A stretch of 64,000 nucleotides of DNA, taken from Trichosphaerium sp. ATCC 40318. Taxonomy: Eukaryota; Protista; Tubulinea. Position numbers and translations under genes: made by a program. The first letter of the stretch is position 1, and every line of letters starts with the position of its first letter. The stretch is from positions 558,001-622,000 of the forward strand of contig JALMLS010000064.1 in NCBI GenBank assembly GCA_038496445.1, written 5' to 3'. Under the pieces are notes generated by a model that made no database searches, was not told where the DNA came from, and saw only the letters and a list, made by a program, of their open reading frames with translations. This document shows, piece by piece, positions 3,790 to 13,510 of the stretch.

Positions 3790-6700
3790 ATGCAAGCTAC
3801 TACAAACGCTGAATCGCTCAAAATTAAGACCGCAATGGTAAGAAACCCTTTAAACATTCTAATATACTCGTGTAAATACAAACAAGGCTATTTGACGCAG
3901 TGACACGCTGTTGTTCGTTACTTCAAGTTAGCCGTTATTCTCTTTTTGCTTACAGTGCTCATATCGCATTCTTACACCTGTTGTAGGTCATTAAAAGACT
4001 AAGAGAAATAAAACAACTTTTTGTGGAGGGAAAAAATCCAGACAAATGGGAAAGCAACGTTAAAGCCTTACAAGGTACGGACATACGACGAAAGAATGTC
4101 ACCGAGGAAAAAACGGTTAAAAGTTTTTGGAATTGGAAATAAAAAGTTCTAAAACGTTTGAATAGGTATTACTGAGCTCGCCCAAACATATGATGGACAA
4201 CCACCTGCAGAACAGCTGATTAAAGTCATTAGAAAACTTTTACTTGTTTCTATCGCTAAAAACGTACAATCAAGACGTTCAACTATCGTAAAGGAGACAT
4301 GCATCGTACGTTTACATTTCTAACCGCTAAAAAACCGATTTGTTCAAAACAAAAAAACCGAAAAATCTGAACTTGTAGATTTCTTATTTGCTCTCTAGTG
4401 TATTACTGCTATTGTCACAGCCTTCAAAGAACTATCGAGCTCATTAATTGCCGTGGTATGTTACCTTATAAAGCTGTAGAGCTTCTTTAACGAATCTCGC
4501 CTCTTACTTTTTATCGTACCTTTAGCTCCTTCCTGCTATTCAAAATAACCTTATGCGCGCTAAATCAGTGTTTTACCAACCTGCTAATCAGTGTATGCTT
4601 TCTATTCTCAAGAACATACCATTCACTGCAATCGCACCTGCTATCACAAACGGTGTTGTACACAAACACCCAAAACTCCGAACTTTGTATGTTTTAACAT
4701 TTTTTTTTCTTTTTTATTTCCGATCTATCAAACGCTTTTGTTCTATTTCTGACGCAAACGTAAAGCTCCACATTGTATCTATTCTATGGCCTTCGTATGG
4801 TAGCAAAGGAAAACGTAGAAAACCTTGAGCATGTAGTTGAAGTTGAGCTTCTAGAAGACGCAATAGCGACTGCTCTCGGCGATAAAGACCCGAAAGTTCG
4901 GTATGTGTGAACCTTTTTTTTTTGAGATATTTCTTTTTATTTTTTTATGTGTTTTCTCAATCTCCTTGAAATCTAAGTTCCCTTGTATCTTGCTGACCCT
5001 TTTTATAGACAAAATGCTCGTAATTGCTTCACTACATATAAGAGCCTTGCTCCTCATCGTCTTGAGTCTCTACAACAAAAGATTTCGCCAGCAACTTGGC
5101 ATCAGGTCCGTCTTTATTTTTTGTTTCTTTTCTGGTTTTTTTTTTGGTTGTTCTTCGTTTAAAATGAGTTATGATGAAAATTTAACCCTCTAGCATAATT
5201 CTCCGTGTTGACAGAGTGCTACTGATGCTTAATTTTATCGATTTTTTTGAGTTTTCTTCTTCTGCCACCTCATTGTGAGATGATCGCTGATAGACTATTT
5301 TTAGATGAATAAACCTGAAAAACCAGCAGAACGTGAAACAATCGCTCAATTGAGGCGCAAAAAGATTGCTGAACAAAAGGCTGCATCTGCTGCTTTGTCA
5401 ACACCTAAAAAGAGTCTCACTTCTGGTAACACTAGAACACCTAGAAGGACACCTCGTAGAACACCAAGTAGAACACCAAGACGTACACTACAACAAACAC
5501 CAAGAAGGACACCTAGCAAGGCTGTTGTTAGAACACCAAACAAGTCTTCTCGCACACCTACAAGAACACCTTCACGTAATGCTCCTAACAGAACTACACC
5601 GGGCCGTAAGCCCCGAACACCTAAAAGAACTCCAAAAAGAACTCCACAAAGAAAGCCAAACGTAAGTCAAAGACGTCATCATTTTATTCAACCAATATTT
5701 ACTTTTTCTTTTAGACTGCTGTGGCTCCTGCTAGCGTAGAAGCTTCTACTACACTGCAACCTGTTATTGTACCTGTTGCTGCACCTGTTGAGCAACCTGT
5801 CGTTGTACCTGCCGCTCAACAAGGACCACTCATCGACTTTGCTGCACAATCTCCTGCACCAAAATCAACACCTCAAATACCTCCTTCAGCAGATATTGCT
5901 TCCGAGACTTTGGTTCCGCAACCTTTTGAAGTACCTCCTGTATTTGACGAGCCAACCACTGTACCACCAGTATTTGACGTCCCAAGCGTAACCGAAGAAA
6001 TCGTTGTGCCAGAAGTATTTGACGCGCCTATTACTCCATCTTGTGTCACCGAAGACTACTCTCAAATCGTCGTTCCTCCAGTCTTTGACGAACCACAACA
6101 AGCTCCTTCACCTCAAGAACCAGCTAAAGTACCTCAAGAGCCTGTAGTCGAGCCAGAAACAGTCGCACCTACACCTCAAGAGCCTGTTGTTACATACAAG
6201 GCCATCGATGAAGATTTGGCTCTCGAGATTGCTCAAGGCATTCCACTACGCAACAAGCTCGCTGACTTGCCTGTAATGAACTCACCAATATCACGTGATA
6301 TTTCAAAAGGCGTTGAGCTCAAGAGCAAGTTCGCTGGTATGCCTCGTATTGGTAGCCCAGTAGCTCGTGATATCTCTAAAGGAGTTTCCTTAAAAAGCAA
6401 GTTTGATTCTTTGCTCGTCCAACCTAAAGGTACTTAACTGATTTTTTTGTGATGAAGCAAGTTCTGTTTTTTTTTTCGCATTTTTTTCTTACTGTCTTTT
6501 TTTTTAAAGGTCTCTTGACTGAAGTCAATGCTGGTGTCGAGTTGAAGAGTAAATTTGCTGATATGAAAGTATTGGAATCACCTATTTCTCGTAATATTAA
6601 AGAAGGTGTTGAACTCAAGAGTAAGTTCGCTGAGTACCCAGTACTCGCAACACGTACGTTTTCTTCTTTCTTTCTCCTTTTTTATTAGAAATATTACTAA

Positions 6701-9700
6701 ACTGACGGCTTTATTAGCTATGAAAGCAGCTGTAAGAGATGGCGTCGAGTTGAAGAGTAAATTCGCTGATATGAAAGTATTGGGTTCTCCTATCGCTCGC
6801 GACATTTCACAAGGCGTTGAACTCAAGAGCAAGTTCGCTGACTATCCAGCACTCGCTACACGTAAGTTTTGCTCTTATTTTCTTATTATCAATTGCAAGC
6901 TACTCTTTTGACACTTTTTTAATCTAGCAATGAAAGCAGCTGTAAGAGGTGGTGTTGAGTTGAAGAGTAAATACGCTGATATGAAAGTATTGGAATCACC
7001 TGTTGCTCATAATATCAGACGAGGAGTTGAACTTAAGAGCAAGTTCGCTGGATACAAAACACAACCATCACGTAAGTTAATTTACAACGACCTTGTTCTT
7101 CACTTAAAAACTGCATTATCAAACGCTTATACTCTTGTTTTAGACCTTGTCCGTCAGTTAGCTACTGGTGTTGAGTTGAAGAGTAAATTCGCTGGATTAC
7201 CTACCCTTAATACACGTACGTACCGGTAAAGCTAATGTTCTCTTTCGTGAAGATTACATAGTCTTACTTTTTTGCTTTAGCTATGAAGAAGGCTGTGAAA
7301 GGCGGTGTTCAGTTGACAAGCAAGTTTGCTGATCTTCCTACACTTCAAACACGTACGTACTCTATCTCTGACATACTCTTTGACTCACCTTTTATTAGCA
7401 ATGAAGAAAGCTGTACAAGGCGGTGTTCAATTGAAAAGCAAATTCTCTGATTTACCTACACTTGCTACACGTACGTGCTAAACTAGTTGTAATCTTATCT
7501 GTAATATTCTTTGAGCACAATTCGTCTAATCATTCTTTGCTTAGCAATGAAGAAAGCAGTCCAAGATGGCGTCCAATTGACAAGTAAATTCGCTGATCTC
7601 CCAACCCTTCAAACACGTGAGTACTTGTATTCTGTTTTGTTTGTTGCAGAGGCGTTTGTCTGACTTTCTTTTCTAGCTATGAAACAAGCTGTTCAACAAG
7701 GTGTTCAATTGACAAGCAAGTTCGCAGGTCTTCCTACACTTGATACACGTAAGCACTAAATTCGTGTTTGTTCTGTATTGCACATCGGTCTAACTTCACC
7801 TCGTAGCAATGAAAAGAGCTGTCCAAGATGGTGTTCAATTGACCAGTAAATTCGCTGGCCTTCCAACCCTTCAAACACGTGAGTATTGTATTCCTATTTG
7901 GTTATTGTAACCTTAGTCTTACTTTCGTTTAGCAATGAAGAAAGCTGTACAAGAAGGCGTTCAATTGACGAGCAAGTTCGCTAGTCTTCCTACTCTTAAC
8001 CAAGAGCTTAAGGATAGCGTACACCAAGGCACCTCGCTTAAACCTGTTCCTGTTCAAGAGGAGCCAGTTGTTGAGCAACAAGAAACAGAAACAACACAAG
8101 ATGCTGCTGAAGAAGGTTCGTGATATATATTTTTTTTTTGCTTTCGATTTCTTTTTCTTTTGTTTCGAGGACTATTGCTGTTTCCTTTGTTCTTTTGATG
8201 AGTTAGCATACGCTTACTAATTACTAGATGCTGAACTTGTCAATTTCGCAGAGGAGCCTAAACAAGAGATGGATACTGAGGTTATTGAGTCTCAAGAAAT
8301 CGAAGAATTTTCTCCTGTCGATGAAATTGATTTTGTTCATGATGCTGTTTCTGTTGTTGATGAAACACCTGAGATGGATGAGATTGAAATGATGTCTGTT
8401 TTTGATGACGAGGACGTGGAAGGAATTGAAGATTTCATCGATGAGATCCTTGACTCTGATGATGAAGCCGAGTTGGCTGATTCTTCTCTTGATGTGAACC
8501 TTAGTGATATTGAGGACGAAGATGAGGATGTATATGCTTCTTTATACTCTGTAGATGATGTTGAAAGCGTCATTGAAGAGTTGTCTGTTGCTATCCAAGT
8601 TGTTGAAGAAGCATCAACTGAACTTGTCGAAGAAGAAGAAATCATACATGATGTTGTTGAAGACGTTACCGAAGACCTTGACACTGCTGAAGAAGTTGCC
8701 GAAGACGTTGCTGATATTACCGAAGCCCTTGTTGAAAGTGTTGTTGAAGACGTTGCTGAGGATGTTGTCGAAGACATTGTTGAAGACACTATTGAAGACG
8801 TTGTTGAAGACGCTGCTGAAGACGCTGCTGAAGACATCACCGACGAGGTTGCTGAAGACATTGCTGAAGACGTTGTTGAAGATGTTGAAGATGTCGTTGA
8901 AGATGTTATTGAAGACATTGCCGAAGACGCTGCTGAAGACAATGTCGAAGAGGTTGCTGAAGACATTGCTGAAGACGTTGCTGAAGACATTGTTGAAGAC
9001 ATTGCTGAAGACGTTGTTGAAGATGGTGTTGAAGACGCTGCTGAAGACGTTGAGGATGTTGTTGAAGACGCTGCTGAAGACGTTGTAGAGGACATTGTTG
9101 AAGTTGCTGGTGAAGAAAACGAAGAGGTTATTGTGGAACAAGACATTGCTGAAGCGATTGAAGCTACTGAGGTGGTTGAACCACAAGAAGAAGCATGTGC
9201 TGAAATCGAAGATTCTGTTGAAGATGCTAGCCCTATTCTTGACGAACCTGCAGCAGAAATCCAAGAAGCAGTTGTCTCCGAACCAGAAGAAGAACCAGAA
9301 CAAGAAATTGAAATCGAAGAAACCAGGACGATCGAACCTGAAGCTCTTGCTGAAGATACTGCTGAACATGGAGCCGAATTCGATGAGGTTGAAGAAGAAC
9401 CACAACAACAAGAAGTCATTGACGTTGAGCCAGAAGAGGAAGTAGCTGAAGATAATCCTGTCGAAGAAGACGAAGAAGCAGAAGCTTCCTCTGGAAGCGA
9501 AAGCGGATCTAGTCAAGAAAATGACGAAGAACCTGTTGAACCTGAGGTTACTCCTATACCATCAGAGGAAACTAACGATGTCGACCCTGACGTTGAAGAG
9601 AAGAACGTTGCTGAAGATGAAACAGAAGAACCTGTACGTCCTTTTTTTTTGAAGTCTTTGAAACAAAGATTTTCTGACTTGTTTTTCTAGAAACGTGTTC

Positions 9701-10164
9701 CTCGTAGACTCGTCAAGATTCGCCGTAAGAAGAAGGTAATCATCAAGCAGAAGCACTCTAGAGTTGTAGAACCTGAAGTTGCAGCACCTGTAGAACCAGA
9801 ACAACAAGAACCAGAGCCTCAACAGCAAGCTGTTGCTGAGCCTGAAGAGGTTGAAAAAGAACAAGTTGAAGAAAAAGTTGAGGAGGTAAAGCCAGCTAAA
9901 AAGACGAAGAAGAAGAGGAGAGCTATTCGTATTAAGAAGACAACAAGGAAAACACGCTCTAAAGCAGCAAAAGCCACTCCTGTTGTTGTTATTGACGATG
10001 AAGATGACAAGGAAAACGACCAAAACGCTGAAAACGAAGAAGCCAGTACCCCACCTCCTAAAAAGACTGTAACAAGACGTGTACGTGGTTCAAGAAAAGC
10101 ACCATCTGCATCTCCTATCGCTGGACGTACTAGAAGACGTAGACCTATCAACTATACCGAGTAA
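3790..10164 (+). CDS. Large CLASP-like TOG/HEAT protein with TP-rich basic region, 17 tandem WH2-like repeats, long acidic region and basic tail
   Basis: N-terminal exons (NPDKWESNVKALQGI...SRRSTIVKETCI...GVVHKHPKLR...LGDKDPKVRQNARNCF) match CLASP_N HEAT repeats. They are followed by TPRR/TPKR repeats, PPVFD repeats, GV(E/Q)L(K/T)SKF repeats and ED(V/I/A)(V/A) repeats; the protein ends ...RRRPINYTE* (TAA 10162-10164). About 20 GT-AG introns. Confidence 0.8.
6208..8048 (+). repeat. Array of 17 approximately 24-aa coding repeats, many on individual 72-nt exons
   Basis: Unit (T/S)PMKKAVQxGVQLTSKFAxLPTL; e.g. exon 7281-7352 is 72 nt. Introns recur at the same phase-1 position (ACA C|gt...ag|CA ATG). 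Confidence 0.9.
8650..9110 (+). repeat. Degenerate 12-nt coding repeat (GAAGAC-RYT-GYT) giving EDVV/EDIA/EDAA tetrapeptides
   Basis: Directly visible; it also explains the long antisense and alternative-frame ORFs here. Confidence 0.9.
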
Positions 10165-10548
10165 TTCTATGGTTTGGTTGTGTATGTAAAATCTTGTATT
10201 TCTAATTTTTTGTCTCATTGACGTCAGCACCTAAACCACCTTTTGTACATAAAAAAATAAAGTTGTTTGACCATAAAATACCAAGCCTTCACAATGCTCT
10301 CAATGTTCTCGTACGCTCCTTTAGTGCAATAAAAGGGGTGCTAGTACTCTAAACATACAACAATCTACCAGCTTACCTGTCGATGCCTAGAAGCTTTCTG
10401 ATGTCCATCAAGTTTCTTGCCTGTTGAAATGGCTTTTTAACAAAGAAAATAGCTGGTTTATAAAATGGTTGCCAAACTTGACTGAAGCGGACAATAGTTC
10501 ACAAATATCTGGATAATCTAGGATATCCCAGATATCTAAGCGCCTCTA

Positions 10549-11520
10549 ATGGGTGCAGCTCAACCTAAAGAGGAACGCGTTCTGGAACGCAGTATACTTC
10601 CGTTCGTGCCACCAGAGATACTGACAGATATTCTGCGTTATTTAAACAAAAAACAGCGTATTGAAGCTTCAGTGGTATCTCATCAATTTAATGACATCAT
10701 ACGTGGCCGTATTGGCATTTATTATTTAGAGTTAGAAGAATCATCAGATTGTCGTGTTTTAAAAGGCAGTCCATTGCTTAAAAACACTATTATTTCATTC
10801 CCAATGATTGTTACTGGCTTAATTAATGCTTCAATTTCAATATCGAAAAGCGACTTTGCTTGTCTTTATGGTGTCCACACGATAGATCTTTCATGGGTTA
10901 AGGTTGACTTTCGACCGATTGATGATGAAGCTATCCTCTTATTACTGGAAAAGACTACAAGGAACTATACTGGTTTTTTAGGTAAGAGAGAAATACCTAA
11001 GTCAGTAAAAGATGGACAACCTAAAATTGATCGTAAATGGTATGGATTGTTTTCTGATGTTTCTGAAAAACACACAATCCATACCATTATTTTTTGTAGT
11101 GCTCTTATTACAGATAAAGGTGCTAAATCATTGGCTGGCGTACACACAATAAAGTTGCGACAGTGTCCTAAAATAACAGATGAGGGTATTATGGCGTTGT
11201 CTGGTGTACACACTATAGAGTTGCATCGTTGTGCTAAAGTAACAGATGAGGGCATTATAGCATTGTCTGGCGTACACACAATAACATTGATCGACTGTAC
11301 AATAACGGATAAGGGTATTATGGCGTTGGCTGGTGTACACAGAATAAAGTTGGTCAGTTGCCATAAAATAACAGATGAGGGTATTATGGCGTTGTCTGGT
11401 GTACACACAATAGAATTGCTTCTTTGTCATGAAATAACAGCTGATGGTGTTAAGGCATTAAAAGATAAAAGAAGATTCACTCACAGTGATGAACAACTAA
11501 GGGCAGTACATAGAAATTAA
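10549..11520 (+). CDS. Intronless F-box + LRR protein (ITDEGIxALxGVHTI repeats)
   Basis: F-box LPFVPPEILTDILRYL...; five to six 22-23-aa LRRs; 323-aa uninterrupted ORF. Confidence 0.85.
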   Translation: MGAAQPKEERVLERSILPFVPPEILTDILRYLNKKQRIEASVVSHQFNDIIRGRIGIYYLELEESSDCRVLKGSPLLKNTIISFPMIVTGLINASISISKSDFACLYGVHTIDLSWVKVDFRPIDDEAILLLLEKTTRNYTGFLGKREIPKSVKDGQPKIDRKWYGLFSDVSEKHTIHTIIFCSALITDKGAKSLAGVHTIKLRQCPKITDEGIMALSGVHTIELHRCAKVTDEGIIALSGVHTITLIDCTITDKGIMALAGVHRIKLVSCHKITDEGIMALSGVHTIELLLCHEITADGVKALKDKRRFTHSDEQLRAVHRN

Positions 11521-12109: not shown

Positions 12110-13510
12110 TTATTCATTTACATTTTTTTGCTGCTGTCGAAGAAGTTGCTTTTTTACTTTTCTTTTTGCGAATACTACTTCATGTGACTCTTCTGATGGA
12201 TTATCTTCTTTGAATTTTTTGTAGTTTGTGGCAAGTTTACAGTAGCTATCTATATCTACTGCATCTGGCCTTGTTTCAGGACTAATACCTGCTTCTTCTA
12301 GAAAGTCATTTGTCAATCTTGAGTCTATAAGTTTAAGAGAGTTTCTTATTTTTTTCCTCCTTTGTGTGAACGTTTGTTGACAAATGTATTCTAGTTCCTT
12401 AATAGGCGATGTTATATCAATATTTTTAGGTTGTATAATAACAGCTGAAGCATCTACTTTTGGTGGAGGCACAAACACGGAACCAGGTACATCAAAAAGA
12501 AGCTAACACAGCAAAGTCAAAAAAAACCCAAGTCAAATAGCAAAAAATGTGTTCGTACTTTTGCATCACAACAGTGTTGCACCATTACTGATAACCTTGA
12601 GTATTCCCTTGTATTTGGTTTTGCTACAATACGCTATTGGTTATGTTAGTAATTAAAAACATGAATCGTAGTTAAAGCACCTCAGCCACTTCCTAAATGC
12701 ACGTGATTAGTTGTATACAAAAAAAAAAGTTTCAAGTAGTAAATTGTACCTTCTGGAACATTAACACGAACGGTATTCTTCCATATTTAAACATCTGTTC
12801 TCTCTTCGGAACTAACCGAATCCATTTTAACAATAGAGCAGTACTAACACTGAATGGAAGATTTCCAACAATAACAGCATCAGGATCATCTACAAAAACA
12901 CCTGTTAACCACGTGGTTTTTTTTTTTCTCATTATTTTACCATCATACCACTCCTTCATTTGAGTGTGCTCTTTTGCAAATAATAAAGCTTCATTTACTT
13001 TCATCACATCATTATATTCTATACTCAGTCTATCCACTGCAGCTCTGTGACATGAGCGTTAATTTTTTTTTTTGACATTATACCGTTCTTACCTCTGTAA
13101 TATGTCCAAGACGGGCTTGAATCGTGTATCTTTTTCGACTACAATTAGTTTCTTGCATCCTCTGTTTAAAATTGAACGTGTTAGACTCCCAGGCCCTATG
13201 AAAGCGTAAATGCGCGAATAAGGTGCGTTTAAGCAGTAATTACATACCTGGGCCTACTTCTAAGACTGTTTTTCCTTCAAGGGCTCCTGCAGCGCGTACG
13301 ACGCGGTCTATATACTCTTAGAATACTATCACGCTGTTTACTTGCCTGTAACATTGAGATCAAGAATGAAATTTTGTGAAAGCTGCTGTTTAGCTCTGTC
13401 TACGCGTTAGATAGTCGAATTAGGCCATAAATACCGTACGTCAGTCTAAACAACTTAATAAGCTCCCTTGCGCTTGGTAAGGGCGGAAGCTTCAATAAAC
13501 TTGATGCCAT
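12110..13510 (-). CDS. TFB1M: Mitochondrial rRNA adenine dimethyltransferase (KsgA/Dim1 family, TFB1M-like)
   Basis: MASSLLKLPPLPSARELIKLFRL...AKQQLSQNFILDLNVT...VLEVGPG/PGSLTRSIL...IVGNLPFSVST...LMFQKEVA...FVPPPKVDASAV...FTQRRKKIRNSL. Confidence 0.9.

Follow-up and report, generated by a model that had tools for sequence, protein, structure and literature searches.

The window analysed here is a stretch of 64,000 nucleotides from Trichosphaerium sp. ATCC 40318 (Tubulinea; contig JALMLS010000064.1, positions 558,001 to 622,000; all positions below are counted from the first letter of the window). It contains, on the forward strand, a gene which encodes 17 tandem copies of a 24-residue unit resembling the actin-binding WH2 motif and, ahead of them and probably in the same protein, a TOG domain of the CLASP type. 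What is established is the gene with its expression and splicing, the anatomy of its repeats and their sequence resemblances; the architecture as a whole looks real and is probably new, and the function which we propose for it, a link between microtubules and actin, is plausible.

The model of the gene has 21 exons and 1,566 codons, beginning with an ATG at 3790 and ending with a stop at 10162-10164. We checked its frame one exon at a time, with no more than two bases carried across each junction; the frame is open throughout (0 internal stops) and every intron is of the GT..AG type. The introns near the gene are short, the G+C content there is 35-45%, and the DNA of the window is eukaryotic. 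Domain scans and searches of the gene were made on single exons or on exon-wise pieces. For the RNA evidence we mapped to the gene the contigs of three public runs (X1, X2 and X3) from two studies. These contigs skip introns, which means that they derive from RNA. Twelve introns are confirmed as joints of spliced contigs from the two studies, among them the six introns lying between the TOG exons (6/6) and intron 9634-9690, which excises an in-frame stop. Intron 6862-6927 is backed by a loose contig end identical to the end of the preceding exon. Among the listed contigs there are no joints at 5105>5305, 5661>5715, 6429>6510, 6653>6718 or 8115>8252, the last of these, upstream of a long acidic exon, being placed by inference. 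The contigs of X3 are identical to the window while those of X1 and X2 show a few letter differences, such as a T>A at 7678, which keeps a split proline codon, and a deletion of 3 letters at 9547; these differences look like those between strains of one species.

The repeat array and its likeness to WH2

We searched the six frames of the 64-kb window with the pattern hydrophobic-x3-hydrophobic-x2-G-[VIT]-x-L-[KRT]-x-[KTV]. It has 17 matches, all of them on the + strand at 6216-8075 and none elsewhere. The 17 units align without gaps, the glycine G8 and the leucine L11 are invariant, and neighbouring glycine codons of one exon are spaced by 72 nucleotides, hence a period of 24 residues. The consensus of the unit is M-K-x-x-V-x-x-G-V-x-L-K-S-K-F-A-x-L-P-x-L; F15 occurs in 15 of the 17 units, and linkers of about 9 residues separate one unit from the next. 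The net charge of the units is mostly positive (0 to +6 per exon), except in the first and the last of the exons bearing them. A first-pass annotation of this DNA had described 17 repeats with a period of 24 residues, had given the last of them as LKDSVHQGTSLKPV and had stated that most open with S/T-P followed by basic residues. We found the same number, the same period and the same last unit, with an S/T-P ahead of 13 units, eight times as T-P-M-K and five times as S-P-(I/V)-x-(R/H). The same annotation had placed the whole feature, TOG domain included, at 6208-8048; the TOG domain is encoded upstream of that range.

T-P-M-K is a full S/T-P-x-K/R site. In eight junctions its proline codon is split by an intron (C|CA or C|CT), which falls between the threonine and the Met-Lys pair, and RNA contigs support five of these eight junctions (four by joints, and 6861>6928 by the loose end mentioned above). 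Together with the 14 sites [ST]-P-x-[KR], the full consensus of the cyclin-dependent kinases (CDK), which we counted in the basic exon preceding the array, the eight T-P-M-K bear out the CDK-type sites reported earlier.

The exons themselves tell something of the history of the array. Units 10 to 15 each fill one phase-1 exon of 72 nucleotides and units 4 to 9 are paired on exons of 144 nucleotides; hence, we concluded that the array grew by exon duplication. Identity within the array is about 60% for introns and 78% for exons. For units 11 to 16 the proportion of synonymous differences (pS) is 0.55, which is near saturation, while that of nonsynonymous differences (pN) is 0.12, giving a pN/pS of 0.22. 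This means that the array is old and that its peptide is under purifying selection.

A profile of the 17 units was then compared to all 177,635 distinct PDB sequences, with a threshold of E<=10. Four sequences were found, all of them WH2 motifs of N-WASP aligned on LDQIRQGIQLKSV, the best with an E-value of 6e-4. The core of the unit, hydrophobic-x3-(I/V)-x2-G-(V/I)-(Q/E)-L-K-S, is of the kind found in the WH2 motifs of WASP, N-WASP and WIP, and is nearly that of the second WH2 of N-WASP. A segment of the LKKT/V type is present: L11 (17/17) is followed by K, T or R, then mostly by S, then by K in 16 of the 17 units. The canonical WH2 is anchored by helix positions P1, P4, P5 and P8 and by a basic tail (PMC13364712). 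P4 and P8 are hydrophobic in all 17 units, which also keep the Gly, Leu and Lys, but not the other two anchors (see below). A WH2-like nature of the unit is supported at the level of sequence, by the PDB matches and by the relatives described below. The structure predicted by AlphaFold for a double unit contains only short helices of 4-7 residues, at low confidence (a predicted local distance difference test, pLDDT, of 61), as is usual for a linear motif, and is uninformative.

The TOG domain and the flanking regions

The first seven exons of the model total 242 codons, a length that suits a single TOG domain (PF12348 CLASP_N / PF21041), in which six HEAT repeats build a paddle of some 220-250 residues. 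The last two of them match Pfam CLASP_N, their matches spanning 163-193 and 188-225 of the 227 profile positions, hence in collinear order, with E-values of 0.035 and 0.03; scanned singly, each exon scores 14 bits against a gathering cut-off of 27 bits. By our own estimate the chance that a second exon matches the same family at such a score is about 0.035/24,736. As the two matches lie on adjoining exons, a chance origin is therefore, on this estimate, very unlikely. A further exon piece, 4526-4684, has neighbours in the protein atlas which carry XMAP215_CLASP_TOG and CLASP_N, with scores of 0.94-0.95. In TOG domains a conserved tryptophan of the first intra-HEAT loop touches tubulin. This tryptophan is present in the 'DKWESNVKAL' stretch of exon 2, reading NPDKWESNVKAL, whose DKW we take to be the motif expected for the first TOG loop. 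Searches of the PDB sequences with two of the TOG exons gave no match. The N-terminal TOG domain is thus supported exon by exon, and the CLASP type assigned to it in the first annotation agrees with the two collinear CLASP_N exons and with the atlas neighbours of the third.

Between the TOG exons and the array lie a basic exon rich in Thr-Pro, of net charge +32, which RNA contigs cover at 5303-5481 and 5380-5632, and an acidic, proline-rich spacer. The spacer matches no Pfam family. It holds four copies of a motif (V/I)(P/V)P(V/E)VFD(E/V/A)P, which may be a docking motif; we read VPPVFDEP, VPPVFDVP, VPEVFDAP and VPPVFDEP at 5900-6100 (+), directly before the repeats. The acidic exon downstream of the array contains, at about 8685-9138, a periodic repeat of 12/36 nucleotides which encodes some 35 copies of (V/A)(A/V/E)ED tetrapeptides; its weak Pfam matches (Prominin and others) look compositional. 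The last exon matches no Pfam family. The features are collected in Table 1.

Table 1. Positions of the parts of the gene within the window
Feature	Position	Strand	Evidence
TOG part, seven exons	3790-3837, 3987-4074, 4166-4305, 4399-4455, 4526-4686, 4766-4900, 5009-5105	+	RNA contigs, Pfam CLASP_N, protein atlas
Confirmed introns, 5' part	3838-3986, 4075-4165, 4306-4398, 4456-4525, 4687-4765, 4901-5008	+	contig joints
Putative intron joining the TOG exons to the remainder	5106-5304 (199 nucleotides)	+	donor GTCCGT, acceptor TTTTAG
Basic Thr-Pro-rich exon, 119 codons	5305-5661	+	composition, motif counts, RNA coverage
Acidic proline-rich spacer	5715-6215	+	translation; no Pfam match
17 tandem 24-residue TP/SP-capped WH2-like units	6216-8075	+	motif pattern, alignment, splice joints
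Units 1-3	exon 5715-6429	+	exon model
Units 4-9, two per exon	6510-6653, 6718-6861, 6928-7071	+	exon model
Units 10-15, one per exon	7144-7215, 7281-7352, 7399-7470, 7545-7616, 7677-7748, 7807-7878	+	exon model
Units 16-17	exon 7933-8115	+	exon model
Acidic exon, about 460 codons	8252-9633	+	translation; contigs 8536-8834, 9040-9633
Last exon, mixed tail with basic Lys/Arg clusters, then stop	9691-10164	+	RNA-confirmed intron 9634-9690
Confirmed introns, 3' part	7072-7143, 7216-7280, 7617-7676, 7749-7806, 7879-7932, 9634-9690	+	contig joints

The next gene downstream, at 10540-11517 (+), is one open frame of 326 codons for an F-box protein with LRR_6 repeats bearing GVHTI(E/K)L, and 12113-13058 (-) holds exons which encode an rRNA adenine dimethylase (Pfam RrnaAD, E 1.7e-11).

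Ki-67-like relatives of the unit

We searched 1.84 billion representative proteins with a profile of a double unit. It gave 17 matches, of which 15 are convincing relatives and two are artefacts of periodicity. The artefacts are a bacterial DUF285 / Por-secretion-tail protein of 3513 residues (P0003, E 9e-13), whose score is accounted for by WDVSKGTxF units of similar period, and an EF-hand protein (P0013). Neither passes the control by comparison of profiles, in which their probabilities are 17% and 51%. Their presence shows that the E-values of tandem arrays in this protein search are inflated. The units of the convincing relatives pass the same control: hhalign aligns them to the units of the present gene in the same register with a probability of 95.7% and an E-value of 9e-9, and the hmmsearch E-value between our profile and their arrays is 1.6e-14. 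A scan of metagenomes with the repeat found no relative.

The unit of the 15 relatives reads L-x-T-P-(M/L/V)-(K/R)-x-x-I-x-x-G-x-x-L-(K/R)-x-T-K-K, with a period of 21-24 residues, and its T and P are 90-100% conserved. Eleven of these proteins have a PP1-binding domain of the Ki-67/RepoMan type, five an FHA domain and three a SAP domain; FHA and/or PP1_bind is found in 13 of the 15. Two of them, both from sponges, are named Ki-67-like by NCBI (XP_065828196.1 of Oscarella lobularis and XP_062509487.1 of Corticium candelabrum), and one comes from the choanoflagellate Mylnosiga (EP00047_P024096). In P0001, P0004, P0009, P0012 and others, which carry FHA, PP1-binding and in some cases SAP/HeH domains, up to 22 units L-x-T-P-x-R-x-x-I-x-x-G-x-x-L-R-x-T-K-K follow each other head to tail, often with an exact period of 21 residues.

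The array of the present gene is like those of Oscarella, Corticium and Mylnosiga in being long and head-to-tail, with a period within the same range and with a common L-x-T-P-(M/L/V)-(K/R)-x-x-(I/V)-x-x-G-x-x-L-(K/R). It differs from them in the end of the unit, which is S-K-F-A-x-L-P instead of T-K-K, and in its company: theirs is FHA, PP1-binding and SAP/HeH domains, whereas here there is a TOG domain and none of these on the exons scanned, among which neither FHA nor PP1_bind (PF15276) found any match.

A profile of the Ki-67-like units finds among PDB sequences the WH2 peptides of N-WASP, MIM, VopL, INF2 and Spire. Pfam WH2 is matched by 6 of 50 Ki-67-like units, no other family recurring, and one relative (P0017) passes it with 31.3 bits for a cut-off of 23.1. 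From these matches we concluded that the unit is one of a TP-capped WH2-like class which it shares with early Ki-67 orthologues. We found no paper in the literature linking Ki-67, or the repeats of its orthologues, to a WH2-like unit.

A possible link between microtubules and actin

Proteins which resemble the present one in part are well known. A WH2 motif binds monomeric actin in the cleft between subdomains 1 and 3. Spire, Cordon-bleu and VopL/VopF have 3-4 WH2 motifs, and the array is like theirs in its form, with several motifs of this type on short linkers; it differs in having 17 of them, and these nucleators have no tubulin-binding domain. Tandem WH2 arrays sequester, nucleate and sever actin (PMC13364712). 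In Stu2/XMAP215 a basic, disordered region which binds the microtubule lattice directly follows the TOG, and at least two TOGs are needed for the polymerase (PMC5999394). A TOG followed by a basic disordered region is likewise what the gene model has here; unlike Stu2/XMAP215/CLASP, the present protein has one TOG and no coiled coil that we could see, and the WH2-like array is absent from theirs. With a single TOG it is therefore unlikely to be a microtubule polymerase alone. Parts binding microtubules and parts binding or assembling actin are joined in one polypeptide in WHAMM, in the spectraplakins, in GAS2-like proteins and in APC. WHAMM combines a microtubule-binding coiled coil with two WH2 motifs and with C and A motifs for Arp2/3; the latter are not seen here. 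We know of no linker among these which joins a TOG domain to a long array of the WH2 type.

The explanation which we prefer, and hold tentatively, is that of one expressed gene encoding a mostly disordered cytoskeletal linker, in which the TOG domain and the WH2-like units tie tubulin or microtubules to actin. The parts would follow in the order TOG, basic Thr-Pro stretch, acidic proline-rich spacer, 17 units, acidic block and tail with basic clusters, and each unit would consist of L-x-(T/S)-P, an amphipathic helix of two turns, G-V-(E/Q)-L-(K/T)-S-K and, at its end, F-A-x-L-P. Tubulin or microtubules would be held by the TOG domain together with the basic region, while the units would offer actin monomers many binding sites, so that the array could sequester, deliver or nucleate actin beside microtubules. 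Phosphorylation by mitotic CDK, at the T/S-P which caps the helices and at the 14 sites of the basic region, would loosen both interactions. The TOG junction, actin binding, tubulin binding and the kinase switch are what we infer.

Several observations weigh against this explanation, and some of them bear on the fusion itself. The junction 5105>5305 is bridged by none of the listed contigs, and its donor, GTCCGT, is weak, indeed the weakest of the model; the gap of 199 nucleotides would be the longest intron of the model, and an ATG stands exactly at 5305. This is what one would see if there were two genes, a small TOG protein ending just after 5105 and a second protein beginning at 5305 with the basic region and comprising the array and the acidic block. 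We consider this unlikely. Only some 150-200 nucleotides would be left for a 3' untranslated region, a promoter and a 5' untranslated region, whereas the open frame of the next gene begins 376 nucleotides after the stop of this one; reading through 5105 gives 19 hydrophobic junk codons and then a stop; a CTGAT resembling a branch point, a pyrimidine run and an AG precede 5305; and the frame is in phase 0 on both sides of 5106-5304. Moreover, the second contig record of X1 matches the genome from 5303 onwards, behind 15 letters which do not align, and its 2-nucleotide overhang, AG, is identical to the two letters which close exon 7, so that one contig hints at the predicted junction. A basic region after a TOG is also the usual design (PMC5999394). 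A T-rich run at 5113-5145 (+), inside the putative intron, draws unrelated contigs of high depth (82 in X1), which obscure the RNA coverage of the stretch. The fusion claimed by the first-pass annotation thus keeps its frame and the hint of one contig but lacks a bridging one among those listed, and on balance we think it likely that the TOG exons and the repeat exons form one gene. No protein with both a TOG domain and these repeats was found among the 1.84 billion representatives, from which the window's own protein was not returned either; we found no paper joining TOG and WH2, and the combination does appear to be undescribed, as had been proposed.

The remaining difficulties concern the unit. 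The repeats had been described as WH2-like, and a comparison of profiles had been suggested as a check; this did recover WH2 peptides of actin complexes from the PDB, but no exon reached the Pfam model. PF02205 (gathering cut-off 23.1 bits) had no match, even at E<=10, on ten exon-wise pieces representing 15 of the 17 units (unit 15 lay outside and unit 9 was partial). Of the WH2 anchors defined above, P5 is mostly Lys (K/S/A) and P1 is variable. When compared to the WH2 of N-WASP, the helix is cut by a proline, found at P3 in 13 units, and is therefore short, of about two turns; Lys takes the place of the second Leu of 'LL'; the conserved half F-A-x-L-P is added outside WH2; and Thr stands in place of the first Lys of LKKT in five units. 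N-WASP has two copies 28 residues apart and the units follow each other every 24 residues, a shorter period at which neighbouring units may not all bind actin at once. Finally, the unit has its nearest relatives in Ki-67-like proteins, not in cytoskeletal ones, and Ki-67-like proteins are expected at chromosomes, not on actin. One may thus suppose that the unit is multivalent, of the Ki-67 type and switched by CDK, its likeness to WH2 reflecting convergence on helix-G-x-x-L-K, that the arrays serve at mitotic chromosomes or the spindle either as a charged brush under phospho-regulation or to dock a partner other than actin, and that the TOG protein is a mitotic microtubule-associated protein equipped with such an array. 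Several findings speak for it: among 1.84 billion proteins all convincing relatives are Ki-67-like, with FHA, PP1_bind or SAP; beyond the WH2 core they share the L-x-T-P-hydrophobic-basic stretch, in the same register; their T and P are conserved; Pfam WH2 is silent on the exon pieces of the array; and both basic and acidic blocks occur in the protein. We regard it as a serious possibility but a rather unlikely one: peptides of WH2-actin complexes are what both unit profiles independently retrieve from the PDB, other recurrent matches being few, Pfam WH2 accepts some of the Ki-67-like units, and we found neither a partner besides actin with a known motif of such a form nor a paper tying the Ki-67 repeats to such a unit.

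Two other ways of reading the unit seem to us improbable. Its second half, L-K-S-K-F-A, could bind filaments, not monomers, in the manner of the Lifeact/ITPKA motif VxxLxxxFE. The spacing L-x-x-x-F is that of P4-P8 of this motif (PMC13364712), F15 is nearly constant, and AlphaFold puts a short helix on K-S-K-F-A (at low confidence); but P1, which with P8 is essential (PMC13364712), is Gly and not Val, P9 is Ala and not Glu, and the Phe is absent from the Ki-67-like relatives. As a formal match we rejected the motif (SFM), only the L (P4) and the F (P8) fitting. Even less probable, in our view, is that the units are additional repeats binding the lattice or tubulin in the style of tau and similar microtubule-associated proteins. 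The TOG domain and the basic region nearby and the positive charge of most units would suit this, yet that charge is modest next to the dedicated basic exon, family and PDB searches matched no microtubule-binding repeat, and the relatives are not microtubule-associated proteins. The bolder extension of the linker explanation is that the unit, of 21-24 residues, is an old actin-binding module of amoeba-type protists, choanoflagellates and sponges, switched off by CDK at the helix cap, by which early Ki-67-type chromosome proteins and the TOG protein would couple mitotic structures (the surface of chromosomes and microtubules, respectively) to actin, as the cell cycle dictates; we judge it distinctly doubtful.

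Cross-talk between microtubules and actin usually passes through large spectraplakins, complexes of formins with plus-end-tracking proteins (+TIPs), or WHAMM. If the linker explanation is true, a single chain with a TOG domain and 17 motifs of the actin-monomer type would be a very direct and easily dissected coupler, and to our knowledge its array would be by far the longest of the WH2 type in such a protein. On the basis of sequence resemblance only, this is of interest for research on the cytoskeleton and on mitosis: the TOG fusion would be an undescribed architecture, and, on the bolder extension, the Ki-67 orthologues would have a link to actin which has so far gone unrecognised. The Ki-67-like arrays are possibly the weightier part of the finding, as they would offer a testable lead to a binding partner of the early Ki-67 repeats and to its control by CDK.

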